Positions 1 through 14,472 of a stretch of DNA of 64,000 nt are shown in pieces. This DNA comes from Hyalangium minutum. Lineage in GTDB: Bacteria; Myxococcota; Myxococcia; Myxococcales; Myxococcaceae. Under the pieces are notes generated by a model that was not told where the DNA came from, made no database searches, and saw only the letters and a program-made list of their open reading frames with translations. Within the stretch, counting starts at the first letter, position 1. Each line of letters opens with the position of its first letter. The stretch is from contig NZ_JMCB01000002.1 of the NCBI RefSeq assembly GCF_000737315.1, positions 434,001-498,000 of the forward strand, written 5' to 3'. Position numbers and translations under genes: made by a program.

Positions 1-471
1 ATTGGAGGGCACAAGAAGTTCGTGTTCGTCCCTCATGCCCTGGAAGAGCGAGGTTACCTGACGCTCGGACACGCTCTTCGGGCCGGTGAATACGCCATCA
101 TCCAGACGCTCGAGTCCGACAGTGCCTACTTCGTCGAGCGGTGGAGCTATCCCGATGAGCAGCTCAGGGACAAGGCGCTCGAGTTCGTGAGGAAGTATTG
201 CAGGGACATCCTCATTGGTCTCTTCCGGTCCTCCGAACACGCGCCCCCTTCTCTCTTCTTCGCGCACCGGGAGCACGTGCACGTCGCGGCACACATCGTG
301 ATGGCGGACAGTCTCATCCACCCCAAACGAGGTTTTCCCATGCTGCTCGAAGTCGCGGATTCCTCCTGCAGGGGCGTGTTTGGCACGGACTCCTTCCAAG
401 GGCTTGTCCAGGACGCCTACACGCGCGCGGGTGGCAAGTACGAGTACTTCAACGAGCGGCACTGGCGGTAG
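1..471 (+). CDS. NurA-like (RNase H/PIWI-fold) nuclease, C-terminal part; 5' end lies outside the window
   Basis: Frame 1 is open from base 1 (IGGHKKFVFVPH...) to TAG at 469-471. C-terminal GFPMLLEVAD resembles the NurA GYPxxLxxAH/D motif. Ends 6 nt before a HerA ATPase, the usual NurA partner. Catalytic N-terminal Asp not visible. Confidence 0.6.
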   Translation: MGGHKKFVFVPHALEERGYLTLGHALRAGEYAIIQTLESDSAYFVERWSYPDEQLRDKALEFVRKYCRDILIGLFRSSEHAPPSLFFAHREHVHVAAHIVMADSLIHPKRGFPMLLEVADSSCRGVFGTDSFQGLVQDAYTRAGGKYEYFNERHWR

Positions 472-477
472 CGGGAG

Positions 478-2748
478 ATGGAAGACATGGCGGATGAGAA
501 TTTGCCGAAGTTATCGGGGGTATCCCAGGGCAACAGTCCCTCGCGAGCGGTGGGGGGAGATCCCCGAGAGGTTCCTCGCTCCGCTGGAGGGGGCCTGCCT
601 GAAAGGCCTGTGCGTCTGGGAGCCGCGGTAGGAGCCATGGGGCAAGGTCGGCCGCCTGAGGCGACGACCCTTCCGGCCGCTGGCACACGCCAGGCACCTC
701 GGCCCCCTGTTCGGGAGACTGCCACTCCGGGCAAGCCCGTACCTTCTCCGGCCGCGAGCGCACCTCGGAGCGAGTCCCCACGTCCCGCACAACCGGCAGG
801 AGTCCGGGCCCAGCAGCCTCCGCGGCCCGACGGCAGCCCCAAAGAGGTTCTCCAGAGGCTTCCTGAGGCGGAAGCCCATGCGTTCACCGAGCTGCGCTCC
901 CAGGCGAATGCGGCAGCGGCGGAACTGAACCCCGAGCTCGAGAACGCAGTGGGGTTCACTCATTTCGACACCGCGTCGAGCCAGGACAACCTCATCACCG
1001 TGCTGATGACGCGGGCTGATCTGCACAAGTTGCCCTCGCAGACACTCGTGCGGGTGAAGTCCCTGGAAGACAAGCGCTCCTACCTGGGCGTGGTCGTCCG
1101 CGGCCCCTTCTCCGAGCCGGATGCCGTGGCCGCCAACTCCAACATCGCCGTGGGCGTGGTCGTCCAGGGCAAGAAGCTCTCCTTTACCTTTGATTACCAC
1201 GGCCGGGCCGAGATCGAGATCCTTGGCGAGGAGAACGACGGCAAGGTGCTTCCCCCCGGCCACCGCCCGCGCCCCAAGAGCCCCGTCTTCCTGCTGGATG
1301 ACGAAGAGAGCGAGCACGTCCTGGGGATGAAGGGAGAACTGTGTCTTGGAATGGTCGTGGGCTACAAGCAGATGGAGGCGCGCATCGACGCCCTGGACAA
1401 GTCCATCCTGCCCCGCCATACGGGCATCATCGGGACCACCGGCGGTGGCAAGTCCACCACCGTCGCGACGCTCATCCACCGGGCCCAGTCCGCTGGAGTC
1501 GCCACCATCGTCTTCGATGTGGAAGGTGAATACACCCATGTGGACCAGGCCACCGACGAGCCGACGATGCTCGCGGCACTCCAGCGCAGGAAGCAGCGGC
1601 CCGAGGGGGTGAAGGATCTGCACATCCATCACCTGATAGGCCGTGACACCCGCAACCGCCGTCATAAGCACCGGCATCCCTTCGCGTTGAGCTTCTCGAG
1701 CCTCTCACCCCATGCCATCGCGGAGATTCTCGAGATGACGGACGCGCAGCAGGAGCGCTTCCACAAGGCCTACGAGGTCACCAAGCTGCTGTTGGAGGAT
1801 CTGAAGATCTTCCCGAAGACTCCCGAAGAGCAGCAGCAGTTGATGGAACTCGATGAGCTCTCCACGGGCTATCCGCGCATGACTCTCGAGCACCTCTTGG
1901 ATGTCGTGAGCACGTACATCTACGTCCTGAGCAGTGAGGGAAGGGCTGAGAGCAAGACCAAGACCAAAGGATCCTCCCGGCAGGCCCCGGTGCCCGGCGA
2001 GAACATCGAGGAGGGGGCCGTTGAGTCGGCACCCTCCCAAGGGCCTCGGCTCTTCAGCGAGTTCAAGGAGCACCTGCACCTGGTCTTCCGCCGCGTGCAT
2101 GAGCAGAGCAGCCGGAGCGAGGTGAGCTGGAAGGCCTTGTTTGGCAGGCTCCTGCGCCTGCGGCGCCTCAAAATCTTCGACGTGGGGCATGCACGAGGCG
2201 TGGATTACGACTCCATGCTGACCCCGGGGCGGGTGTCGGTGATCGATCTGTCGGACACAGACTCGCCCCAGCTCAACAATCTCGTCATCGCCGACATCCT
2301 CCGGGGGCTCCAGGAGCGGCAGGAGGAGCGCTACCAGCGGGCCCAGGAACAGAACCACCCCGTCGACCCGGCCCTCATCATCATCGAAGAGGCCCACGAG
2401 TTCCTCTCGGCCAGCCGCATCGCGCAGATGCCGGTGCTCTTCGAGCAGGTCGCTCGCATCGCCAAGCGCGGACGCAAGCGCTGGTTGGGGCTCGTCTTCG
2501 TCACCCAGTTGCCCCAGCACCTGCCCAACGAGGTGCTCGGCCTGCTCAACAACTTCATCATCCACAAGATGACCGACAGCACCGTCATCTCCCGGATGCA
2601 GAAGTCCGTGGGTGGGATCGACGAGAGCCTCTGGGGCCGCGTCCCCCGGCTGGCTCCCGGGCAGGCCATCGCCTCGTTCAGTTCCTTCAAGCGGCCTCTG
2701 ATGATCACCGTGGATCCCGCTCCCGTGAAGCGGTTGCTCGTGGATTGA
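478..2748 (+). CDS. herA: HerA/FtsK-superfamily ATPase (HAS barrel + DUF87 type) with a Pro/Ala-rich N-terminal extension
   Basis: Walker A GTTGGGKS, strand-2 VFDVEGEY, Walker B IIIEEAHEF, arginine finger/Q motif GRKRWLGLVFVTQLP. HAS-barrel-like region LVRVKS...YLGVV...PRPKSPVFL. RBS-like GGGAG before the ATG. Confidence 0.9.
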   Translation: MEDMADENLPKLSGVSQGNSPSRAVGGDPREVPRSAGGGLPERPVRLGAAVGAMGQGRPPEATTLPAAGTRQAPRPPVRETATPGKPVPSPAASAPRSESPRPAQPAGVRAQQPPRPDGSPKEVLQRLPEAEAHAFTELRSQANAAAAELNPELENAVGFTHFDTASSQDNLITVLMTRADLHKLPSQTLVRVKSLEDKRSYLGVVVRGPFSEPDAVAANSNIAVGVVVQGKKLSFTFDYHGRAEIEILGEENDGKVLPPGHRPRPKSPVFLLDDEESEHVLGMKGELCLGMVVGYKQMEARIDALDKSILPRHTGIIGTTGGGKSTTVATLIHRAQSAGVATIVFDVEGEYTHVDQATDEPTMLAALQRRKQRPEGVKDLHIHHLIGRDTRNRRHKHRHPFALSFSSLSPHAIAEILEMTDAQQERFHKAYEVTKLLLEDLKIFPKTPEEQQQLMELDELSTGYPRMTLEHLLDVVSTYIYVLSSEGRAESKTKTKGSSRQAPVPGENIEEGAVESAPSQGPRLFSEFKEHLHLVFRRVHEQSSRSEVSWKALFGRLLRLRRLKIFDVGHARGVDYDSMLTPGRVSVIDLSDTDSPQLNNLVIADILRGLQERQEERYQRAQEQNHPVDPALIIIEEAHEFLSASRIAQMPVLFEQVARIAKRGRKRWLGLVFVTQLPQHLPNEVLGLLNNFIIHKMTDSTVISRMQKSVGGIDESLWGRVPRLAPGQAIASFSSFKRPLMITVDPAPVKRLLVD

Positions 2749-2795
2749 GACCGCGAGACCGCTTGGACACATTCGCGCGGGTGCCCTGAGGAGAT

Positions 2796-2815
2796 CCCCC
2801 GAAAGGGGGGTATGC
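2796..2815 (+). repeat. 20-bp hairpin repeat, copy 1 (CCCCCGAAAGGGGGGTATGC)
   Basis: Read directly; 18/20 identical to 5176-5195. Forms a C5-GAAA-G5 stem-loop. Confidence 0.7.
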
Positions 2816-2825
2816 CCTCGATGAC

Positions 2826-2856
2826 GCCTTTCCTAGCTTGTTTGTCACTAGGAGGC
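2826..2856 (+). promoter_or_regulatory. Hairpin occluding the Shine-Dalgarno of the kinase-synthetase gene
   Basis: GCC-TT-TCCTAG (2826-2836) pairs with CTAGGA-GGC (2848-2856): 9 Watson-Crick pairs with a 2-nt bulge, covering AGGAGG at 2850-2855; ATG at 2861. Confidence 0.5.
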
Positions 2857-2860
2857 TCGA

Positions 2861-4495
2861 ATGTCGAAGGGAGAGCGGGTTCTTGTCATCTCGGGTCCGA
2901 TTGGAGCAGGCAAGAGCACGCTTGCCCAAGGACTCGTCGAGCGCCATGGAGCACATCGTGTCAGCTCTCGGGAGCTGTTGCTCGCGCGCATGGGAGAACG
3001 CAGTGGGGACCGGCGCACGCTCCAGGAGGCCGGTGCGGCGCTGGACCGCGAGACGGGTGGGCGCTGGGTGGCGGACAGCGTGAAGGAAGTCCTTCAGCGG
3101 CAGGAAGGACCGCCCCGTCTACTCATCGTGGACTCTGTCCGCATCGCATCCCAGGCCGAGGCGCTGCGAAGAGCCCTGGGGTCCCGGGTGGTGCATGTGC
3201 ACCTGTCCGCGCCGGAGCAAGAACTCGCGGCGCGATACGAACAACGGCGTTCGCGGGCGGTGTCCGACTCCGAGGGCACCTCGTTCGAGGAGGCCCGCGC
3301 CGATGCCACGGAGCGCGGAGTGGAGACGCTCGCGGAGTTCGCGGACCTGGCGCTGAACACACACCGGCATCCCCCCGAGGCGGTGCTGGTCCAGGTCGCA
3401 TGCCTGCTCGGGCTGTTTGGCCGAGACGTGGAGCGGCTCGTCGACGTGTTGGTCGGAGGCCAGTATGGAAGCGAGGGCAAGGGGCAGATCGCCTCCTATC
3501 TCGCGCCGGAATACGACGTCTTGGTGCGCGTGGGGGGGCCCAATGCCGGACATCGCGTGTACGAGGAGCTGGGGCCTTATACCTTCCACCAGCTTCCGTC
3601 GGGGACACGGGCGGCGCCTCGCGCGCGGGTGGCGCTGGGGCCTGGAGCCACTCTCTCGCTGACGTCTCTTCAGCAAGAGATCGCTGACTGCCGGATCGAG
3701 CCGGGGAGGCTCTTCATCGATCCCCAAGCGCTCGTCATCGAACCCTCGGACGTCGCGTTCGAGGAAGAGTCCTTGCGGAAGCAAATTGCGTCGACGGCAC
3801 AAGGTGTGGGGATGGCGACGGCGCGCAAGGTGCTGCGCACGGCGGCGAAGCCGCAGGTCCGGCTTGCGAAGGAGCTTGAAGAGCTGAGGCCCTTTCTCTC
3901 CCCTACGCGAGAGGTGCTGGAGGACACCTATGCGGGTGGCGGTAAAATCCTCGTCGAGGGGACCCAGGGGGCGGGTTTGAGCTTGCACCATGGGGATTAT
4001 CCGTATGTGACCTCGCGGGACACGACGGCGAGCGGGTGTCTGGCGGAGGCCGGCATTGCTCCAGGCCGGGTGCGTAAGACGCTTCTGGTATGCCGCACTT
4101 ATCCCATTCGGGTGCAGAACCCCGATGGAGGGGATGGCACCTCGGGCCCCATGAGCAGAGAACTTTCCTGGGATGAGATTGCCCAGCGCTCGGGCTTGCC
4201 TCTGGAGGAGCTGCTGACGCAGGAGCGTACCTCGACGACGAAGCGGCAGCGGCGAGTCTCCGAGTTCGATTGGAGCCTGCTGCGCAAGGCTGCCGCGCTC
4301 AATGCCCCCACGGACGTGGTGCTGACCTTCGTGGACTATCTCGCCGCGAGCAACAGGTCCGCCCGGCGCTTCGAGCAATTGACCCCAGAGGTGCACCACC
4401 TCATTGAAGGCATCGAGCGGGTCGCCCAGGCCCCGGTGTCGATCCTGTCCACGGGCTTTGGTTTTCAGAACATCCTCGACAGGAGGGCGTGGTGA
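2861..4495 (+). CDS. Fusion of an N-terminal P-loop (d)NMP-kinase-like domain and a short PurZ/archaeal-type adenylosuccinate synthetase-like domain
   Basis: Kinase: GPIGAGKST, RRTLQEAG, LIVDSVR. Synthetase (about aa 194-544): GGQYGSEGKG, GGPNAGH, IASTAQGVG, EGTQG...HHGDYPYVTSRD, RTYPIRV, STTKRQRRV, LTFVDYL. Confidence 0.9.
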   Translation: MSKGERVLVISGPIGAGKSTLAQGLVERHGAHRVSSRELLLARMGERSGDRRTLQEAGAALDRETGGRWVADSVKEVLQRQEGPPRLLIVDSVRIASQAEALRRALGSRVVHVHLSAPEQELAARYEQRRSRAVSDSEGTSFEEARADATERGVETLAEFADLALNTHRHPPEAVLVQVACLLGLFGRDVERLVDVLVGGQYGSEGKGQIASYLAPEYDVLVRVGGPNAGHRVYEELGPYTFHQLPSGTRAAPRARVALGPGATLSLTSLQQEIADCRIEPGRLFIDPQALVIEPSDVAFEEESLRKQIASTAQGVGMATARKVLRTAAKPQVRLAKELEELRPFLSPTREVLEDTYAGGGKILVEGTQGAGLSLHHGDYPYVTSRDTTASGCLAEAGIAPGRVRKTLLVCRTYPIRVQNPDGGDGTSGPMSRELSWDEIAQRSGLPLEELLTQERTSTTKRQRRVSEFDWSLLRKAAALNAPTDVVLTFVDYLAASNRSARRFEQLTPEVHHLIEGIERVAQAPVSILSTGFGFQNILDRRAW

Positions 4496-5169
4496 GCGGG
4501 ATTCGCGCGGACGACTTCTCCGAACGCTTTCCCCTCCTCTTTCACATGGCGGAGGCAGGGAGCTGGCCGAGCATCCAGCGCCATGGGCTGCTGAGCACCT
4601 CGGCGCTCCTGGACCTCTTCGAGGTGAGGGGCGAGCAGCGGGTGGCCTTGGAAGCACGGCATCGGCCCGAGTCTGTCACGCTCTATCACCCCCGGCACGG
4701 GACTGCGGTCGTGCGAGACCAGAAACCCATGGATGATGCAGGGCTGCTGCGGAGTCTGAGCGGCGGACTGTCTCCAACGGATTGGTACCAACTGCTCAAT
4801 GCCCGGGTGTTCTTCTGGGTCACCCACGAGCGGCTCACGAAGCTTCTCAATGCCCGAGCGTACCGGAACAAGCGGCAGACGGTGCTGACGCTAGACACCG
4901 CGCGGCTGCTGGCTCGCCATGAGGCGCGCGTCATGCTGTCCCCACTCAACAGTGGAGCGACGAAGCCATCTGCATGGCCTCGTGGACCGGACACCTTCCT
5001 GCCGATGGTGCGATACCCGTTCTCTTCTTGGGACCAGAGGCGCAAGCGCCGGGATCCGGTGGTCGAACTGACCGTCACCTATTCCGTGCCCGACATCAGG
5101 GACTTCGTGCTGCGAGTCGAGGAGTACGCGGGGGGGAAGCCAGACACGCTGTTGTTCAAGGCCAGGTGA
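4489..5169 (+). CDS. DarT-like ADP-ribosyltransferase-fold protein (DUF7002-like)
   Basis: LFHMAEAGSWPSIQRHGLLS matches the DarT N-terminal YHxTxxxNLxSIxxxGLLS pattern; central VFFW; C-terminal VVELTV carries a candidate catalytic Glu. GTG start overlaps the upstream stop (translational coupling). Confidence 0.65.
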   Translation: MVSGIRADDFSERFPLLFHMAEAGSWPSIQRHGLLSTSALLDLFEVRGEQRVALEARHRPESVTLYHPRHGTAVVRDQKPMDDAGLLRSLSGGLSPTDWYQLLNARVFFWVTHERLTKLLNARAYRNKRQTVLTLDTARLLARHEARVMLSPLNSGATKPSAWPRGPDTFLPMVRYPFSSWDQRRKRRDPVVELTVTYSVPDIRDFVLRVEEYAGGKPDTLLFKAR

Positions 5170-5175
5170 GTCACA

Positions 5176-5195
5176 CCCCCGAACGGGGGATATGC
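5176..5195 (+). repeat. 20-bp hairpin repeat, copy 2 (CCCCCGAACGGGGGATATGC)
   Basis: Read directly; lies 6 nt after the ART stop and 52 nt before the next ATG. Confidence 0.7.
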
Positions 5196-5247
5196 GTCTC
5201 TGCCTCGGGTCTCTAATTTGTGTCCTGAAGCAACCCAGGAGACGTCA

Positions 5248-5442
5248 ATGGCGACCGGAGTACAGGAGTTCAAGACGGGTGAGAAGTGCGAGACCAAAGG
5301 CAACTACGCGTTCGTTCGGTACGTGGACAATCCGCAGACCCCCCTTCCGACAATCAATGAGCGGAACATTCCTCTCGACAAGGGGGACACGTTCCCTCCC
5401 ATCAAGTCTCAGAACAGGGCAGCTTGGTGGAGGCTTACCTAG
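5248..5442 (+). CDS. Small YjzC-like protein (64 aa)
   Basis: AGGAG RBS then ATG 5248. FKTGEKCETKGNY...LDKGDTFPP...WWRL resembles the YjzC pattern (KxGEKAPxxGxY...LxKGDxFP). Confidence 0.65.
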   Translation: MATGVQEFKTGEKCETKGNYAFVRYVDNPQTPLPTINERNIPLDKGDTFPPIKSQNRAAWWRLT

Positions 5443-5459
5443 GTGACGTAGACGTGATG

Positions 5460-5493
5460 GCGAGCGTCGGAGCCTGTGAGCTCTGACGCTCGC
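5460..5493. terminator. Stem-loop between convergent genes, probable terminator
   Basis: GCGAGCGTCGGAGC / GCTCTGACGCTCGC: 14-bp stem with one G:U pair and a 6-nt loop, between the stops at 5442 (+) and 5503 (-). Confidence 0.65.
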
Positions 5494-5502
5494 ATCTAAG
5501 CG

Positions 5503-6774
5503 CTACCGGCAGGGGTAGTTGGACTTCGTGCAGGTGACGCCGGAGTTATACGAGTCGTTGAAGTGGGCGTAGTACCCGTCATAGAGCGGGTGCGTCGTCC
5601 CGGTCTCGCCCGCCAACTTGACGAAGATCTCCTCGTTCTCGTTGAGCGCGTCCTGGGACCAGTTCTGCGAGCCCGTGTACACCCGGTACTGGTACGCGGA
5701 GCCGTACTTGCCGTACACGAGGAAGAACTTGTCGTGCACCTTGTCGTGCCGGCGGATGTTCACCCCCGCATCCAGCAGCGAGTTGTAGACCGACTGCGCC
5801 ATGTCGATGCCGTCGGTCGAGTTCCCGCTCACCACCATCCACACCGCGCAGCCCCCGTTGCGGTAGCGCAGCACCTGGTTGAGTAGCTCCGGGCGCCCCG
5901 TGGTGACGAACGCCATGCCAATGCGCAGGCGGCAGTTCGCGTCCGGCGTGACGTCGTTCAGCCGCGTGACGATGGTGTCCGTCTGGCCCACGGCCTCGGG
6001 CGAGGCGTAGACGTCCGCAGGGTTGGACAGGTAGTAGCCCCGGCCGCTCGCCGAGTCGTAGTAGTCATTGTTGGCGTAGTGCCGCCGGTTCCACATGTCC
6101 GAGAAGTGGGCGTTGAGCCCGTCGTACAGCGTGACGGCGTCATACACGGTGATGGCGTTGTTGGACGCATCCGGTCCGCTCGCGTACGTCAGGTTCGATG
6201 AGCCGAACCAGGACACGTTCGGGTAGAGCACCCCGCTGGGATCCGTCGCCTGGCTGAACGTGAACATCTTCGTGTGCATATTGCCGGCGCTGCTCGTGCC
6301 GATGCAGCCCCCGCCACCACTCGCGTTGGTGCAGAACTTCGCGTTGGCGATCTTCTTGAGGGTCGCCACCGCCGGATCCGTGGAGGCTGCGTTCTTCCCA
6401 TCCAGCACCAGGGACACAGAGACGCCCCGCGTCTGCGCCGCCAGCAGCGCATCCGCCACGCCATCAATGCTGATGGAGTGAATGGCGCCCCGGATGGTGC
6501 CACCCGCGGGCGTGCTGTGGATGAGCCGCTTCAGCTCGTCCGTGATGGTGTAGTCCCGGCCCGAGAACGCGGGCGGGTTGCTGAAGTGTGCCCAGACCCG
6601 CTTGCCGCCCACCGTCCCCGTCGCGGAGCTGATCCCCGCCTGAACGACGCCGGTCTCCTCGCCCAGGAGCTCTTCTTCCTCGGGAGAGCGAGGCGCGCAG
6701 GCGGTGAGCGCCGCCGCGCTGAGAGCCACTGCCAGTGCCTGCAGAACCGCCTCAATGTTTGTCCGCGAACGCAT
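5503..6774 (-). CDS. Phospholipase D-superfamily lipoprotein with two HxK modules
   Basis: Start MRSRTNIE at 6774 follows GGAGG; lipobox LTAC; HTK...GSSN and HDK...GSQN motifs. The ORF-track extension to 7182 is upstream read-through. Confidence 0.8.
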   Translation of the reverse strand: MRSRTNIEAVLQALAVALSAAALTACAPRSPEEEELLGEETGVVQAGISSATGTVGGKRVWAHFSNPPAFSGRDYTITDELKRLIHSTPAGGTIRGAIHSISIDGVADALLAAQTRGVSVSLVLDGKNAASTDPAVATLKKIANAKFCTNASGGGGCIGTSSAGNMHTKMFTFSQATDPSGVLYPNVSWFGSSNLTYASGPDASNNAITVYDAVTLYDGLNAHFSDMWNRRHYANNDYYDSASGRGYYLSNPADVYASPEAVGQTDTIVTRLNDVTPDANCRLRIGMAFVTTGRPELLNQVLRYRNGGCAVWMVVSGNSTDGIDMAQSVYNSLLDAGVNIRRHDKVHDKFFLVYGKYGSAYQYRVYTGSQNWSQDALNENEEIFVKLAGETGTTHPLYDGYYAHFNDSYNSGVTCTKSNYPCR

Positions 6775-6867
6775 CTGCTCCCTCCAGGGGCTCGACAACC
6801 CGAGAAAGCCAGAATCACGGAGATAATGATAAATCAAGTGCTCCAGGAGCCGGTGACTTTCGATATT

Positions 6868-6886
6868 GAAAATGAGAACCATTATC
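6868..6886. promoter_or_regulatory. Fur box
   Basis: GAAAATGAGAACCATTATC is 16/19 to GATAATGATAATCATTATC, in an AT-rich gap upstream of hmuY; a partial box GATAATGATAA lies at 6822-6832. Confidence 0.8.
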
Positions 6887-6976
6887 AAATAGGGTCGCGG
6901 CCCGAAGTCTTCCTCTCTCTGCACACGCCCCCTGGACAGGACTGTGGCCATGAACTCCTCCACCGAAGTGAGACCG

Positions 6977-7735
6977 ATGAATCGCGAGACCCGAGCCCGA
7001 TGGGTATGGGCGATGATGATGATGTCGATGGTGCCGCTGTGGGCAGGCTGCGGCACGGACGACGAGCCCGAGCCCGCACCGAAGTGTGAGGCCAGCGCCG
7101 TGCGGTGCACCGAGCAGAGCATCGACCAGCTCGACCTGCTCACCACCGTGTCCACGGGAGAGATTCGCGAGGAGGGAACCACCTCCGGCCAGTTCCATAC
7201 CTATGTGGATGCTCGCGCGGGCGGGCTCACGCCCACGCAGTCCTATACCTACGTCAGCTTCACCGAGCAGGGGCTGACCCGGGTGTCGGTGGATGATCAG
7301 GCGGCACTGGCGTCGACGGACTGGGACATTGCCTTCCGCCGCTTCGTCATCCGGGTGAACAGCGGCGTCTCGGGGCCCTCCTGCGTCTCCGTGGCGCAGG
7401 CCCCGGTGGGCACGACCTTTGACTCGGTGACCCGGGTGGACCCCGCGTGGCAGTTCCGCACGGAGAACTACTTCACGGAGACCTGCGAGCTCGTCGAGGA
7501 CGACACCGGCATCGGCGCGCCGGCCGCGGTGATGGGCAGCTACTGGTCCTACGAGAGCTGTCTGGTCATGACGGGCAACGTCTTCGTGCTGCGTCTGGCC
7601 GACAGCCGCCACGTCAAGGTGCAGGTGACGAGCTACTACGAGCCCTCGGTCCAGGAGACGTGCAACCAGACGGGGAGCGCGACCCAGCCGAGCGGCGCGG
7701 CGCAGTTCCGGGTCAAGTGGGCCTTCCTCCCGTGA
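6977..7735 (+). CDS. hmuY: HmuY-family heme-binding lipoprotein
   Basis: Lipoprotein signal ending WAGC; WDIAFRR and VKVQVTSYY motifs; Fur box upstream. Start could be 6944 or 6950. Confidence 0.8.
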   Translation: MNRETRARWVWAMMMMSMVPLWAGCGTDDEPEPAPKCEASAVRCTEQSIDQLDLLTTVSTGEIREEGTTSGQFHTYVDARAGGLTPTQSYTYVSFTEQGLTRVSVDDQAALASTDWDIAFRRFVIRVNSGVSGPSCVSVAQAPVGTTFDSVTRVDPAWQFRTENYFTETCELVEDDTGIGAPAAVMGSYWSYESCLVMTGNVFVLRLADSRHVKVQVTSYYEPSVQETCNQTGSATQPSGAAQFRVKWAFLP

Positions 7736-9201
7736 GGTGGGCGGCGCTGGCGGTCCTCGCCTTCGCCGGGTGTGGCCCGGGCCACTCAGCGCCCGAGCCA
7801 CATGACCGCTCACAGGCCGCGTTGTTGGCGGAGAGCCGGCCGACCTCTCCGTCCTCGAGCCTGCCGCGCTTCGAGGCCACCGAGCAGGTGGAGTCCGTGG
7901 TGTCCCCTGGGGCGCATTTCCGCATCCACTTCACGCGCAGCGGGCCCAATGCGGTGAAGGCTGCGGATGCCGATGGCAATGGCATCCCGGATGCGGTCGA
8001 CATCGTGGCTCGGACCTACGATCGGGTCGCGGCCTTCTACGCGGGGCTGGGCTACCTGCCTCCGCCCGAGGACTCCTGGCTGCCGGGAGACTTCGGCGGA
8101 GACGGGCTCTTCGATGTCTACCTGTTGGACTTCGCCGGGCGTGCGGACGGGGCGTTCCGGACAGATGGTTGCCAGGGCGCGGAGAGCCAGTGCTCGGGGC
8201 ACATGCTCCAGGAGAATGACTTCACCGGGTACAGCTACCGCTCCTATGAGGAGGCGGTGGACACGCTGGCCAGCCATGAGTTCTTCCATGCCGTGCAGGC
8301 CGCCTACCACCCCAACCTCGGGAGCGTGGCGGTGGAGGGCACCGCGGTCTGGGCGACGGAGCGCTTCGCCCCGGCCTTGGAGGATCTGGAGCAGTTCTCC
8401 TCCGCGTACCTCGATCGGCCGGATCGCAGCCTGGTCGTGGATCCCGACGGGCCGGGCAGCTTCTCCTACGGCTCCTCGCTCTACTTTCAGTTCTTGAGCG
8501 AGCGCTTCGGAGACCGGCTCATCCTGTCGATGTGGGAGGAGAGCGTCCGCACCCCCAGCGTGCGCTGGCCGGCGCTGGTGGATACCGTGCTGCGCCGCGA
8601 TTCGGGCGCGGACTTCGACCGTGCCTTCGCGGAGTTTGCCCAGTGGAACATGGCCACCGGTTCACATGCCCGGCCGGGCCAGGGGTACGCGCGCGGCGAG
8701 GGCTATGCCGAGCTCACCTCCTCCTCCAAGACCTTCCCAGTGGATGAGCCCTCGGTGCGGGTGGCTCCTGCCTCGACGCGATACTTCGAGGTGGCGGGAG
8801 CACAGAACATCTCCGTGAGCTTCCAGCCCACGGATGATGCGGAGACAGGGGCGCTCCACCTCCTGGTGGCAGTGGTGGGCCAGGACGGCACGCTCCAGGT
8901 GACCCGGGCGGACAGTCCAGGGGCTCTGCTCGCCCAGGTGTCCGCGCAGGGTGCCTCCCGCGTGCTGGTGGCGGTCGTGGATGGGCGCCACCAAGGGCTG
9001 GGGCGGTACGGGCGGCTCTGCATCACGGACACCGCCACCGGCTCGCCTTGCGGCGGGGACGCTCCCTCCGATGGCGAGGACAAGGACACGGGCTGCCAGT
9101 CAGCCCCCGGCGGATGGACGTGGTGGCTGTCCTGGCTGGTGCTGGCCGCTGGCGGGTACCGCCCCCTCCGGAAGCGGTCTCACCTCGAAGCTTCGCGCTG
9201 A
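7732..9201 (+). CDS. MXAN_6640-type secreted zinc metalloprotease lipoprotein with a MYXO-CTERM-like tail
   Basis: GTGA overlap with hmuY; lipobox FAGC; HEFFH zincin motif followed by EGTA; C-terminal GCQSAPGG + hydrophobic stretch + RPLRKR. Confidence 0.75.
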   Translation: MRWAALAVLAFAGCGPGHSAPEPHDRSQAALLAESRPTSPSSSLPRFEATEQVESVVSPGAHFRIHFTRSGPNAVKAADADGNGIPDAVDIVARTYDRVAAFYAGLGYLPPPEDSWLPGDFGGDGLFDVYLLDFAGRADGAFRTDGCQGAESQCSGHMLQENDFTGYSYRSYEEAVDTLASHEFFHAVQAAYHPNLGSVAVEGTAVWATERFAPALEDLEQFSSAYLDRPDRSLVVDPDGPGSFSYGSSLYFQFLSERFGDRLILSMWEESVRTPSVRWPALVDTVLRRDSGADFDRAFAEFAQWNMATGSHARPGQGYARGEGYAELTSSSKTFPVDEPSVRVAPASTRYFEVAGAQNISVSFQPTDDAETGALHLLVAVVGQDGTLQVTRADSPGALLAQVSAQGASRVLVAVVDGRHQGLGRYGRLCITDTATGSPCGGDAPSDGEDKDTGCQSAPGGWTWWLSWLVLAAGGYRPLRKRSHLEASR

Positions 9202-10229
9202 GAGGCCGTGGCGCTCACGCCCCGCTCCACGAAGCGCTCGAGGGTTGCCCGGATCTGCGCGCGCATGTTGGCGGCCGATTCGGGCTTTCCCTCGCGCTGG
9301 CGCTGCCGGTAGGTCTCCGCGAGCGCGAAGAGCTCCTCCGAGCGCCTCCGCCCCTCGGCGTTCTCTCTCATCGTGAGGTGGGGATGGGCCTGGAAGAGGG
9401 CGTGCCACTCCTGGCGCACCTCGCTCCAGAAGCCCTGCGTGTCCGTCCAGTAGGCGCTCGCCTCGGGCAGGCTCTGGGCCTCCGGCAGCCGGGTGTAGAC
9501 GTTGAGTCCCCGCTCCCGTACCAGCGCATGCGGCACCGGGCCGAGCACCACCTTCAGGCTGTCCTGCTCGTGCACCCAGCCCGTGGGCGTCAAGGCGTGC
9601 CGGTTGGTGCCAGTCAGGACGTCGTAGTCGCTCCGCTTCGTGTACTCGCGGCGCGGCAAGGGGCGCCATGTCTCGCCGGACTGCCAGGAGGACACTCCGC
9701 GAGCATGGGTCCAGCGCCCCGAGCCCTCATACCGAGGCCCATCGTCGACCTCGAACACGGCTTGGCTCCACGTACACCGGGCCTCCGCCGGGGACAGCGC
9801 ATGGTGCTCCCATGACTGGCGGCCGCGAAACTCGAGCAACTCGGTGTCCTCGAACGTCCAGTCCTGGCGCCAGTGCTTGAGGGGCGCTGGCTGTCCGTCT
9901 TTCGTCACCACCAGGATGTGCTGGAGCGACACGCGCCCCGGCGTGTCCTCCACCACCCCCACCCACTCCGTCCCCGTGGTGCGGTAGGGAGCCCGCGGCG
10001 TGTAGCCCTCGCTGAGGCTCACCGTCTCTTCAAAGGCGAACTCCACCCGGTAGCTTCCCGCCATGCGAAGAATCGCGGCCCTGTCGCGCTCCGGATCACA
10101 CCCCTCTGCCGCCGGCGCTTCCACCTGGACCGTGGGGGAGATGCTCCGAGGCGCGCAGGCCAGGGTCAGTGTGAGCAGGGCCCAGCGCGGCACAGGGCTC
10201 CTCCGTGGCTCCGTTGTGTGGAACGTCAT
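9180..10229 (-). CDS. DUF6607-like lipoprotein
   Basis: DRAAILRMAGSYRV, HWRQDWTFED, PLPRREYTKRSDY and GWVHEQD motifs; in an operon with hmuY and the TonB receptor. Confidence 0.7.
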   Translation of the reverse strand: MTFHTTEPRRSPVPRWALLTLTLACAPRSISPTVQVEAPAAEGCDPERDRAAILRMAGSYRVEFAFEETVSLSEGYTPRAPYRTTGTEWVGVVEDTPGRVSLQHILVVTKDGQPAPLKHWRQDWTFEDTELLEFRGRQSWEHHALSPAEARCTWSQAVFEVDDGPRYEGSGRWTHARGVSSWQSGETWRPLPRREYTKRSDYDVLTGTNRHALTPTGWVHEQDSLKVVLGPVPHALVRERGLNVYTRLPEAQSLPEASAYWTDTQGFWSEVRQEWHALFQAHPHLTMRENAEGRRRSEELFALAETYRQRQREGKPESAANMRAQIRATLERFVERGVSATASQREASR

Positions 10230-12935: not shown

Positions 12936-12984
12936 AAAGTCAAATATGTCAGGGAGACAACTTCTTCCTATTGTCGGGATTCGT

Positions 12985-14472
12985 ATGCTCCTTCGCCCAC
13001 TGGCCCTTGTTGCTGCGCTGTTACTCGCTGCATGTGGATCGGACCCTGGCGCCCCGCGCGGCCCCTTGCCAGACCCAGACACGCAGGCGCCGCAGGTTCA
13101 GGTCCTGTCGCCCACGATGCACCAGAGCATCACCGTGCGGCGCGTGCGCGTGGAGGGGCTGGCCACGGATGATCGGCAGCTGGTGTCCCTCGCCTGGGAG
13201 CTCAATGGCGGGACGCCGCAAGCGCTGGACGTGACGCAGCTGGAGGCTCTGGGCGCCTTTGCCTTCGAGGTGACTCCCCGCCCGGGTGCCAACGCGTTGG
13301 TGCTGCGCGCCCAGGACGCCGCTGGCAACACCACGGAGGGGCGCACCACCTTCCTGTTCGGAAACCAGAGCGGAGGCGGCGGGCTGCACAGCGGGGTGAT
13401 CCGTGACGGCTCCCTCTACACCTGGGGCCGGAACAACCGGGGGCAGCTCGGCCTCGGCGCCGCGGTGACGGAGGACCAGAAGCTGCCGCGGAAGGTGCCG
13501 ACCCTCGAGGATGTCGCCGCCATGGCCTTCAACCAGAACCAGTCCCTGGCGCTGAAGGCGGACGGCACCGTGTGGAGCTGGGGCGAGAACGCGCAGGGGC
13601 AGCTTGGCGTGGGGACTCCGCCCGAGCCGGGCTCACCCCACACGGCGGACCTCACGCCTCGCTCGAGCCCCACGCGGATTCCGGGGCTGAGCGGCGTGGT
13701 GGCCATCGCGCTGGGCTACCGCCATGGTCTGGTGCTGATGGCGGATGGCACCGTGCGAGCCTTTGGGGACAACTCCACCGGCCAACTGGGGGATGGCTCC
13801 TCGGAGGCCCTCAGGGACTCCCCCGTCACGGCCGTGGGGCTGACGGACATCGTGAAGGTGGCCGGTGGCTCCATGCACTCGGTGGCGTTGAGGGCGGACG
13901 GCACCGTCTGGGTCTGGGGGCGCAACACCTACGGCAACCTCGGCCAGGGCACTTCGGATGCGGTGGCCCATCCCAATCCCGTGCAGGTGCCCGGTGTCAC
14001 CGGGGTGATCGACATCGCCACGGGCAGGGACCACGTGCTCGCTTTGCACGCGGATGGGACGGTCTCCTCGTGGGGGCTGGATGCCAGTGGCCAGCTCGGC
14101 TTTGGCGAGCCCATCCCGGACGAGCAAAGCGCCACGCCCGTGAAGGTCAAAGGGCTGGCGGATGCGCGCGCCGTCTTCGCCAACGCCAACATGAGCTATG
14201 CCCGGCGGGCGGATGGCACGCTCGTCTCCTGGGGGCAGAACTTCAACGGCCAGCTCGGCAACGGCGGCAAGACGGACAGCAACGTTCCTGTGACTTCAGT
14301 TCCTCTGCTCAAGGGGCTCTCCTCGTTGGGGGCGGGCGCCACGCACGTCGTCTCCATCCGTGAGGATGGGAAGTTCTTCACGTGGGGGTGGAACTCGCGC
14401 GGCAGCCTGGGCCGGGATGATCTGCTCGATAACTGGTCCTACCCTGAGCCGATCCAGGTCTCGCTGCCATGA
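12985..14472 (+). CDS. Lipoprotein with an Ig-like domain and an RCC1 beta-propeller
   Basis: Lipobox LAAC; repeated WGxNxxGQLG and GxxHxxAL units. Confidence 0.85.
   Translation: MLLRPLALVAALLLAACGSDPGAPRGPLPDPDTQAPQVQVLSPTMHQSITVRRVRVEGLATDDRQLVSLAWELNGGTPQALDVTQLEALGAFAFEVTPRPGANALVLRAQDAAGNTTEGRTTFLFGNQSGGGGLHSGVIRDGSLYTWGRNNRGQLGLGAAVTEDQKLPRKVPTLEDVAAMAFNQNQSLALKADGTVWSWGENAQGQLGVGTPPEPGSPHTADLTPRSSPTRIPGLSGVVAIALGYRHGLVLMADGTVRAFGDNSTGQLGDGSSEALRDSPVTAVGLTDIVKVAGGSMHSVALRADGTVWVWGRNTYGNLGQGTSDAVAHPNPVQVPGVTGVIDIATGRDHVLALHADGTVSSWGLDASGQLGFGEPIPDEQSATPVKVKGLADARAVFANANMSYARRADGTLVSWGQNFNGQLGNGGKTDSNVPVTSVPLLKGLSSLGAGATHVVSIREDGKFFTWGWNSRGSLGRDDLLDNWSYPEPIQVSLP

Follow-up and report, generated by a model that had tools for sequence, protein, structure and literature searches.

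The stretch of DNA analysed here (the window) comprises 64,000 nucleotides of Hyalangium minutum (contig NZ_JMCB01000002.1, positions 434,001 to 498,000), and it carries near its beginning two overlapping genes on the + strand. One encodes an adenylate-kinase-like domain fused to a domain resembling both adenylosuccinate synthetase (AdSS, PurA) and its phage relatives PurZ and PurZ0; the other is a DUF7002 gene, the product of which is predicted to fold as a DarT-like ADP-ribosyltransferase (ART). Together they may form the core of a mobile conflict module.

The two core genes

The fusion gene (2861..4495, +) runs from an ATG at 2861 to a TGA at 4493-4495, encodes 544 aa, and is preceded by a Shine–Dalgarno sequence, AGGAGG, at 2850..2855 (+), 5 nt before the start codon. 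Pfam finds AAA_33/AAA_18 at the N-terminus of the protein and then Adenylsucc_synt. Profile searches against the PDB place an adenylate-kinase-like domain of the nucleoside monophosphate (NMP)-kinase fold at aa 1-190 (2861..3430, +), and PDB matches, NCBIfam scores, and a residue table define a short archaeal-type PurA/PurZ-like domain at aa 194-544 (3440..4492, +). A first-pass annotation, made from the sequence alone, had taken 3440-4495 to be the whole gene, and these coordinates cover only the C-terminal domain, the last two-thirds of the gene. The short protein of ~350 aa that it described is in fact an open reading frame (ORF) of 544 aa with a kinase, though the PurA-like domain is indeed short and lacks the bacterial insertions. 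By considering a lone enzyme, it also overlooked the kinase fusion and two neighbors, namely the DUF7002 gene coupled to the 3' end and the gene for a HerA-like ATPase upstream.

The DUF7002 gene (+, Pfam DUF7002 at 8.5e-76) begins with a GTG at 4489 or 4492 and ends at 5169, so that its first codons and the stop of the fusion gene overlap. Its own Shine–Dalgarno sequence, again AGGAGG, lies at 4481..4486 (+) within the 3' end of the fusion gene. As read from this arrangement, the two genes are translationally coupled.

More than 100 full-length homologues of the fusion protein were found, of ~534 aa each. Compared with its two closest relatives, the fusion gene has a ratio of nonsynonymous to synonymous substitution rates (dN/dS) of 0.19-0.27, which indicates purifying selection, and the same holds for all three window genes of the block (HerA-like, fusion, and DUF7002). 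Both enzyme domains look intact.

The kinase domain

The N-terminal domain has the P-loop GPIGAGKST, a VDSVR motif, and the invariant residues R51, Q55, D91, and R125; across the kinase family, GxxxxGK[ST], R51, D91-x-x-R94, and R125 are all invariant. When a family profile of the domain was run against the PDB, the archaeal AdkA-like protein SSO1041 matched at 2e-8 over the full length and adenylate kinases at ~1e-4. The adk models of NCBIfam gave weak matches, all with scores far under their cut-offs.

One protein of the representative library (P0135, 746 aa) possesses two tandem P-loop kinase domains, a cytidylate-kinase-like one and an AAA_18/33 one, before its PurZ-like domain, which suggests that two phosphorylation steps have been built into a single protein.

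The PurA/PurZ-like domain

The domain belongs to the AdSS superfamily: it scores 180.7 bits with Pfam PF00709 (Adenylsucc_synt) versus a cut-off of 27, and it has the P-loop pattern GxxxGxEGKG and the NAGH motif together with the IMP- and Asp-binding residues of the superfamily. The motifs quoted in the first-pass annotation are all present in the + strand ORF, where one reads GGQYGSEGKG, CRTYPIRV, STTKRQRRV, and LTFVDY. In the PDB, the best match is PurA of Pyrococcus horikoshii (7e-47), then PurZ0 (7VF6, 2e-33) and phiVC8 PurZ (2.5e-32). The narrower models of NCBIfam all remained below their cut-offs, with 271 versus 368 bits for archaeal PurA (NF003295, the best of them), 217.1 versus 300 for PurZ (NF038379), 181 versus 395.6 for bacterial PurA (TIGR00184), and 160 versus 402 for a further PurA model (NF002223). 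PHROG 1211 (PurZ) matches the fusion protein at 1e-68.

Residues were compared with those of E. coli PurA (the numbering of which is used here), P. horikoshii PurA, two PurZ0 enzymes, and five PurZ-type phage enzymes. Ser204 (codon 3470..3472, +) aligns with the catalytic Asp13 and R462 with Arg303, so that two claims made from the letters alone, a Ser in place of Asp13 and a retained equivalent of R303, are borne out by alignment, and the protein is a PurA-family enzyme with the Ser-for-Asp13 state that is typical of PurZ and PurZ0. The catalytic and substrate-binding set (K16, N38, H41, T129, R143, Q224, T239, V273, T301, R303, and R305) is intact in the window protein and in 43-44 of the 44 fused relatives, with R303 being R or K. 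Derived states that are common with PurZ/PurZ0 include D13S, T128S, S241R, G298T, and G302K, as well as a (T/S)SG insertion after the RV motif, which is TSG in the window protein.

The donor pocket is of an intermediate kind, as had been noticed at first reading. In E. coli PurA, Asp333 recognizes the guanine of GTP. The K331-L332-D333 of that enzyme is F-V-D in the window protein, so that Asp333 is retained beside a Phe at K331, and the pocket as a whole reads T-F-V-D-Y, versus N-F-x-N/Q-Y in ATP-type PurZ and T-K/M-L-D in PurA and PurZ0. VP2, S-2L, and Bacillus phage 140 carry N-F-C/A-N/Q-Y, and the PurZ0 of Herb has LTMLDQ. Because Asp333 is kept, GTP is the probable phosphate donor and the fusion enzyme is probably GTP-dependent, in agreement with the first suggestion.

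With regard to donors, we take PurZ0 to use GTP and PurZ to use ATP/dATP. The original PurZ0 paper reportedly makes PurZ0 the GTP user as well. This is opposite to PMC12884076, which gives the preferences of PurZ0 and PurZ as 'ATP and GTP, respectively', a wording that appears reversed, and a preprint that has PurZ moving to ATP/dATP (10.1101/2025.10.22.683976) also gives the reverse of it.

Ser at the Asp13 position is no special mark of this gene; it is the rule throughout a very large clade that includes cellular as well as viral relatives. It is found in 44 of 44 fused relatives (about 500-560 aa) and in 63 of 68 stand-alone ones (about 340-370 aa), S204 is invariant in the family alignment, and an exhaustive search of 1.84 billion representatives returned GSEGKG in nearly all of the 150 closest proteins. 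With these counts and purifying selection, Ser204 is not a chance substitution. In the PurA clade, by comparison, Asp13 occurs in 99% of sequences (PMC12884076).

The phylogeny, a neighbor-joining (NJ) tree with bootstrap, splits all Ser-type sequences from the PurA of P. horikoshii and E. coli with 100% support and clusters 43 of the 44 fused sequences together. PurZ (S-2L, VP2, PMBT28, and JeffCo) and PurZ0 (Herb and Archimedes) each form a clade with 100% support, and the window protein lies outside both. Membership of PurZ or PurZ0 is not supported by the tree, and it also disagrees with the PurZ model score given above and with the identity of the domain to the PurZ/PurZ0 enzymes, which is 31-37%. 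Judging from its residues, the domain would be an active enzyme for the GTP-dependent amination of a 2-amino-6-oxopurine nucleotide by aspartate.

Several more distant contexts were encountered. In one locus (L092, 404-5668), a stand-alone Ser-type PurA-like gene sits in an apparent operon with genes for a P450-like protein, an MMPL transporter, and a UbiA prenyltransferase, a context unrelated to ARTs. A plasmid of Rhizobium leguminosarum (L098, 5363-12926) carries a toyocamycin/sangivamycin-like 7-deazapurine cluster with FolE, a short Asp-type AdSS, PurB, QueE, an IMPDH-like protein, nitrile hydratase alpha, QueC, HAD, and PRT. The short PurA-like relative in this cluster is 33% identical and possesses Asp rather than Ser, which fits, since a GMP-reductase-like step in such clusters would first remove the 2-amino group. 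Genes for dCTP-deaminase/dUTPase-like (DCD) proteins were seen near Ser-type PurA-like genes at three related loci only (L097, 5995-8057; L096, 5030-6621; L003, 10336-11999): on a Sinorhizobium plasmid, such a gene is directly paired with that of a stand-alone enzyme; on an Agrobacterium plasmid, it is upstream together with an S-adenosylmethionine (SAM) methyltransferase gene; and in a soil metagenome-assembled genome (MAG), it is downstream together with a thymidylate synthase gene. They recall the DutZ partner of phage PurZ0, and dutZ is present in every PurZ0 genome (PMC12884076).

The DUF7002 partner

Profile searches identify this protein as DUF7002 and as nothing else: Pfam gave no DarT/DUF4433 match and PADLOC gave none. 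Its structure was modelled with AlphaFold2 from a 50-sequence alignment, which yielded a mean confidence (pLDDT) of 94.4, whereas the single sequence gave only 32. When the model was compared with the PDB using Foldseek, the top 50 matches were all ADP-ribosyltransferases; the best was E. coli DarT1 (8baq, E 4.8e-4, prob 1.0), and others included cholera toxin A1, DarT of M. tuberculosis, and Tpt1. The invariant residues are H18, R58, R75-D76-Q77, F107-F108-W109, Y124, N153, R164, and E192, and they hold even in a subfamily that is only 25% identical. H18 and E192 would be the NAD-binding His and the catalytic Glu of the ART fold.

To examine gene order, 80 loci were fetched from reference genomes, being the best of at least 571 matching genomic stretches, with 48-89% identity. 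DUF7002 lies immediately downstream of the fusion gene in 74 of the 80, nearby on the other strand in 5, and is missing in 1. In a MAG of the Bryobacterales (L034, 8004-10277), a single ORF of 757 aa includes the kinase, PurZ-like, and DUF7002 domains; this may be a true fusion of the three domains or may stem from a frameshift in the assembly.

The association of such an ART with AdSS has been reported in a survey of Legionella ARTs (PMC12522546; BMC Genomics 2025), a purely bioinformatic study. It describes 'Lmac_3114' as a DarT-like ART with the motifs Hxx/FFW/xxE, finds an adenylosuccinate synthetase domain in 60% of its neighborhoods, as an operon, and proposes that purine synthesis regulates the ART. 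By its motifs and the reported operon, we judge DUF7002 to be the same family.

Distribution, third gene, and mobility

The loci span Myxococcota, Acidobacteriota, Gemmatimonadota, Planctomycetota, Verrucomicrobiota, Chloroflexota, Alphaproteobacteria, and Actinomycetota, and archaeal carriers include Nitrosopumilus, Cenarchaeum, and Thermoplasmata. A third gene is found upstream of the pair in 69 of 82 loci. Its product is an M78 (ImmA/IrrE-type, HExxH) peptidase in which 160 residues at the C-terminus form a macrodomain of the TARG1/ALC1/DarG class, with PDB matches to 2afc (2.5e-47), SCO6735 (5.7e-43), TARG1 (2e-11), Poa1p (4e-10), and DarG (5e-5); Pfam Macro was found in 14 of 15 members of the family. 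SCO6735 hydrolyzes thymidine-linked ADP-ribose on DNA (PMC9411070). In the tree of full-length fusions, the window protein groups with other myxobacterial two-gene forms, and these nest among three-gene forms, which suggests that the M78-macrodomain gene was lost secondarily in the myxobacterial lineage.

Two-gene forms are also found on plasmids. Eleven plasmids or megaplasmids carry a full-length fusion, and plasmid copies occur in proteobacteria, some of them on conjugative plasmids. On one plasmid of Burkholderia thailandensis, the pair has TOPRIM/UvrD, transposase, PD-(D/E)XK, and integrase genes around it. What flanks the module differs greatly from locus to locus (123 Pfam families were counted among 125 flanking proteins), and only DUF7002 and the M78-macrodomain gene recur as neighbors of the fused family as a whole. 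Defense or mobile-element genes that do come back in the flanks include ResIII, SNF2/DrmD, DrmA, HsdR, GajB-like, BrxH, IetA, PbeA, Schlafen, Fic, integrases, and transposases.

Two loci from unrelated genomes have a purine gene within 3 kb of the module, on the opposite strand: a canonical purA (L088, 3806-5083, -), located 3 kb away from the fusion gene and encoding a protein with 53% identity to E. coli PurA, and a purB (L081, 10461-11777, -). This is probably coincidence, yet two in 80 loci is more than expected. Adenylosuccinate lyase was also considered as a pathway partner and rejected as a weak lead: all three of its flank matches are encoded on the other strand, and one of them, with 40% identity to E. 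coli PurB, is probably a housekeeping gene.

Viral homologues

The fusion gene occurs on about nine viral contigs. The whole three-gene system is present on two IMG/VR contigs (L102 and L107), and DUF7002 is on only 3 of 2.9 million viral contigs of that database and absent from 50,697 phage records. Viral fusions without DUF7002 include those of L103 (5992-7581, with a near-identical L106) and L104 (6004-7587), the proteins of which are 47-48% identical to the window protein and have the same GSEGKG, LTFVDY, and TTTKRxRR motifs. The L103 gene belongs to a replication module and has a DnaB-like helicase on one side and a primase plus a family-A DNA polymerase on the other, and the L104 gene lies near a PolA. 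A sequence search versus the PDB found no MazZ/DatZ-like protein beside the L103 fusion. In the fusion tree, deep branches belong to copies from viruses or plasmids.

These phage fusions, without the transferase, adjoin PolA as purZ adjoins dpoZ, and we regard this as the strongest evidence so far that the fusion enzyme may make a deoxynucleotide precursor; the tandem-kinase relative points the same way. In known Z-phages, the later steps to dZTP are taken by host PurB and GMP kinase (10.1101/2025.10.22.683976), and a built-in kinase would therefore be a sensible addition. Contigs of the L103/L104 type may represent a third PurZ lineage, fused to a kinase, and may come from phages whose purines are modified, which would be a new class of modified-genome phages.

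Surroundings of the core in the window

Upstream of the fusion gene is a HerA-like ATPase gene (478..2748, +; Pfam DUF87/HerA_C and PADLOC HerA models), with a Pro/Ala-rich low-complexity N-terminal extension of ~220 aa. Before it, positions 1..471 (+) hold the 3' end of a gene that is collinear with L012 5230-5933, which encodes the 391-aa protein preceding HerA in a Hyalangium relative; window 22-468 gave no Pfam match. In that relative (L012, 2819-7887), genes for a sigma-70-like protein, a helix-turn-helix (HTH) protein, a stand-alone M78 peptidase, and the 391-aa protein lie upstream of HerA. A tblastn search over the loci found the HerA-like ATPase to be common only to L011 and L012 (Archangium and Hyalangium relatives). 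Conserved in these two nearest relatives alone, it is treated as a lineage-specific neighbor, which may or may not belong to the module, rather than as the functional partner. The HerA block may be a separate HerA-based defense system or an alternative regulator block that replaces the M78-macrodomain gene.

The 112-nt spacer between the HerA-like gene and the fusion gene contains a G+C hairpin, CCCCC-GAAA-GGGGGG, at 2796..2810 (+), with no T tract. It was not called by the terminator scan and may be a unit boundary, a terminator, or a regulatory element. Scans for sigma-70 promoters and intrinsic terminators were uninformative in this region of 66% GC.

Nucleotide synteny with two relatives covers window 1-5495 and ends just before a PLD-family (PLDc_2, NgoFVII-like) nuclease gene (5503-7182, -), which may be another variable island gene. 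The island genes (window 1-6000) have a GC of 0.63-0.66 and a third-position GC (GC3) of 0.78-0.83, compared with about 0.69-0.72 and 0.85-0.96 for most other window genes, and the lower values are consistent with horizontal acquisition. Downstream of the island are genes with no evident link to the module, for a 584-aa protein with no Pfam match (7447-9201, +), a DUF6607 protein (9180-10229, -), and an RCC1-repeat protein (12946-14472, +). The rest of the window consists of ordinary chromosomal genes and contains no phage, polymerase, purA, or purB genes.

Proposed function and alternative explanations

With a kinase fusion and a DarT-like partner, what was first presented as an odd purine enzyme, possibly a chromosomal Z enzyme, would become part of a mobile conflict module of two or three genes. 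We lean, somewhat beyond even odds, toward the reading that window 2861-5169 is the two-gene core of such a module, nucleotide-converting and ADP-ribosylating at once. Its role is probably antiphage, exerted by abortive infection or in a toxin-antitoxin (TA)-like manner. Domain identities, residue conservation, coupling, distribution, and phage homologues are the observations on which this reading builds; substrates, toxicity, a defense role, and cooperation between the enzymes are what it proposes.

According to this reading, the PurZ-like domain would first transfer a phosphate from GTP to the 6-oxo group of a guanine-type nucleotide (dGMP being the likeliest, GMP the alternative) and then add aspartate, to give N6-succino-2-amino(deoxy)adenylate. 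The fused kinase would phosphorylate a nucleoside monophosphate of the same route, either the succino product itself or the 2-aminoadenine nucleotide that arises after host adenylosuccinate lyase has acted. The DUF7002 transferase would be a harmful NAD+-dependent effector that ADP-ribosylates nucleic-acid bases or a nucleotide, harm being expected because of the analogy with DarT and the co-occurring erasers. The chemistry of the fusion enzyme would gate or feed the transferase, since the fusion enzyme is its only constant partner in two-gene forms and the catalytic residues are all conserved. It might do so by draining dGMP/GTP, by placing a 2-aminoadenine-type nucleotide into replicating DNA, or by making a ligand or acceptor for the transferase; any single version of this gating or feeding is doubtful to tentative at best. 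The M78-macrodomain protein would act as an ADP-ribose eraser and proteolytic switch, and the myxobacterial lineage would have lost it and would carry the HTH/M78/unknown/HerA block upstream instead.

A more specific proposal, which we regard as rather unlikely, is an immune system that makes a deoxy PurZ-type nucleotide (N6-succino-2-aminoadenine or 2-aminoadenine) coupled to NAD+-dependent ADP-ribosylation. In one version of it, the DarT-like enzyme would ADP-ribosylate the succinyl carboxylate or the 2-amino group, of the nucleotide or of DNA containing it, and a TARG1-class macrodomain, which belongs to a class of ester and base-ADP-ribose hydrolases, would be the eraser.

Several points weigh against the conflict-module reading and should be kept in mind. 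The structural matches of DUF7002 are modest, with template-modelling (TM) scores of 0.46-0.50, and are compatible with DNA, RNA, a protein, or a small molecule as the target, and the best matches of the kinase domain are generic adenylate-kinase-like proteins that point to no particular substrate. Deoxy versus ribo specificity is not something that can be read from sequence. No macrodomain gene is present anywhere in the 64-kb window, which leaves the tolerance of a toxic transferase here unexplained. The deep phylogeny is NJ only and has low backbone support, so that the order of the Ser-type subclades is not settled. The association with defense islands was seen without comparison to the genomic background and is suggestive, no PADLOC model matches either core protein, and a literature search found no report of antiphage activity, nor do two antiphage screens mention the module.

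The closest competitor is a TA or addiction module with no dedicated antiphage role, in which the fusion would be the antitoxin and the ART the toxin, and which would stabilize plasmids or islands; we hold it to be unlikely, on a par with the deoxynucleotide-coupled immune system above. An upstream gene that overlaps a downstream putative toxin is a common type II TA layout, copies are found on conjugative plasmids, the macrodomain, fusion, and ART genes together resemble DarTG, and the possible triple fusion of L034 recalls fused DarT-DarG (7omu). Yet a mere binding antitoxin would not need at least 20 invariant catalytic residues in two enzyme domains, and the flanks are rich in defense genes. 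Moreover, DarTG itself is antiphage, according to LeRoux et al. 2022 as cited in PMC13069673, and this alternative therefore overlaps with the conflict-module reading and does not compete with it outright. A true pathway of the PurZ/PurZ0 type, in which the enzyme, host PurB, the kinase, and NDK make dZTP and 2-aminoadenine enters the DNA of the host or of a resident element, is where the first-pass annotation leaned, but it strikes us as improbable. It would account for Ser13 and the other PurZ-type derived residues beside retained Asp-binding ones, for the phage whole-fusion homologues adjoining PolA like purZ beside dpoZ, and for the fused kinase, which could replace the GMP kinase step of known Z-phages (10.1101/2025.10.22.683976). 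It would not account for the lack of DatZ, MazZ/DUF550, DutZ/DmtZ, or a DNA polymerase (PolA included) in the window and in 84 cellular loci, where dATP would outcompete dZTP, nor for an obligate ART partner, which is found in no Z-cluster; the score is under the PurZ cut-off, the protein falls outside the PurZ/PurZ0 clades, and the module flanks are variable and rich in defense genes. That this is no Z-genome cluster had been recognized at the outset, and it stands: the window has no DatZ, MazZ/DUF550, or DpoZ genes, and, as far as its genes were tested, no phage genes nearby.

The remaining explanations are far less probable. Biosynthesis of a nucleoside natural product or modified base, as by ToyG (the PurA-like step in toyocamycin/sangivamycin), is brought to mind by the short relative in the 7-deazapurine cluster of the Rhizobium plasmid (L098) and by the stand-alone Ser-type relative beside P450-like, MMPL, and UbiA genes (L092). 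We give it little credence, as the enzyme of L098 carries an Asp and reaches no more than 33% identity, and neither the fused family nor the window flanks have conserved biosynthetic, tailoring, or export neighbors. Similarly slight is the chance of a phage-derived remnant or counter-defense cargo, with the pair serving a mobile element against host immunity. Fusions in bona fide phage replication modules, the three-gene system on L102 and L107, and the viral or plasmid-borne deep branches speak for such cargo, but the near-absence of DUF7002 from the phage records and viral contigs searched, the lack of phage genes in the window, and the synteny and purifying selection that the block shows across three myxobacterial genomes speak against it. 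A housekeeping adenylosuccinate synthetase of the short archaeal type, which the first-pass annotation had already set aside, is the least probable of all and can be regarded as highly implausible. It has in its favor the best solved-structure match (P. horikoshii PurA), the best NCBIfam model (archaeal-type PurA), and the lack of another purA in the window. Against these one must set the replacement of Asp13 in all 44 fused relatives versus its presence in 99% of the PurA clade (PMC12884076), scores under the cut-offs (271 bits for a required 368), plasmid-borne copies in proteobacteria, a canonical PurA alongside the fusion in L088, variable flanks, a patchy spread that looks like horizontal transfer, and an island GC3 lower than that of the surroundings.

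PurZ chemistry has so far been seen as a phage invention that hides DNA from host defenses. Here, a PurZ-type derived active site is found in a very large cellular and viral clade, one branch of which is tied to a kinase and a DarT-like ART. Were the module an immune system, its effector logic, purine-nucleotide conversion plus ADP-ribosylation, would be new, and hosts and phages would be using the same enzyme toolkit. Should the more specific proposals be true, the kinase-fused enzyme would be a third PurZ lineage, of phages and of cellular defense, with a bearing on the origin of Z-genome chemistry, and a PurZ-type nucleotide combined with ADP-ribosylation would be a new nucleotide-based effector or signal. 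For those who annotate genomes, the practical consequence is that thousands of 'adenylosuccinate synthetase' database entries are probably mis-annotated.

Comparison with known systems

Archaeal-type PurA (P. horikoshii, 2D7U/5K7X) is the best overall sequence match and has the same short architecture with no bacterial insertions. It differs in having Asp13 where the window protein has Ser, its model is not reached (271/368 bits), and it is split from the Ser-type clade at 100% NJ support.

PurZ0, the GTP-using enzyme of the Arthrobacter/Gordonia-type Z-phages (PDB 7VF6, Gordonia phage Archimedes), is likewise built on the short archaeal-type PurA scaffold and shares Ser13, Ser128, Thr298, a non-Gly residue at G302, the SG-containing insertion after the RV motif, and Asp333. 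The identity is 33-37%, however, and the window protein has GSEGKG rather than GSEAKG, an Arg at S241, and, as in PurZ, Phe/Tyr at 331/334. It is also kinase-fused, cellular, and ART-paired, and has no DutZ/DmtZ/DpoZ neighbors. PurZ, the ATP/dATP-using enzyme of the phiVC8, S-2L, and Acinetobacter-type Z-phages (6FM1, 7ODX), shares Ser13, Ser128, Arg241, Lys302, the (T/S)SG insertion, Phe331, and Tyr334. In this case the identity is 31-33%, and the window protein keeps the guanine-recognizing Asp (T-F-V-D-Y versus N-F-x-N/Q-Y), reads GSEGKG rather than GSTGKG, and has a kinase fusion and an ART partner in place of a DatZ/MazZ context. Judged by its residues, the fusion would work as an enzyme most like PurZ0, yet its scores and its position in the tree place it outside PurZ, PurZ0, and PurA alike.

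In DarTG, DarT ADP-ribosylates the bases of single-stranded DNA and the DarG macrodomain reverses the modification. DUF7002 resembles DarT in its ART fold, in having DarT1 as its best structural match, and in its H...(F/Y/W)...E core, and the canonical three-gene module carries a macrodomain of the TARG1/DarG/SCO6735 class. Unlike in DarTG, this macrodomain is fused to M78 and is absent from the window, and a kinase-PurZ-like enzyme is intercalated, which accompanies the ART more constantly (74/80 loci) than the macrodomain gene does (69/82).

The Lmac_3114 paper (PMC12522546) does not note that the AdSS is PurZ-like with Ser13 or that it is fused to a kinase, nor does it mention the M78-macrodomain gene, the spread to archaea and plasmids, or the homologues in phages. 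The wider literature that was searched is likewise silent on the PurZ-like nature of the AdSS, the fused kinase, the third gene, the occurrence in archaea and on plasmids, and the PolA-linked phage homologues. The association of ART and AdSS itself is already published.

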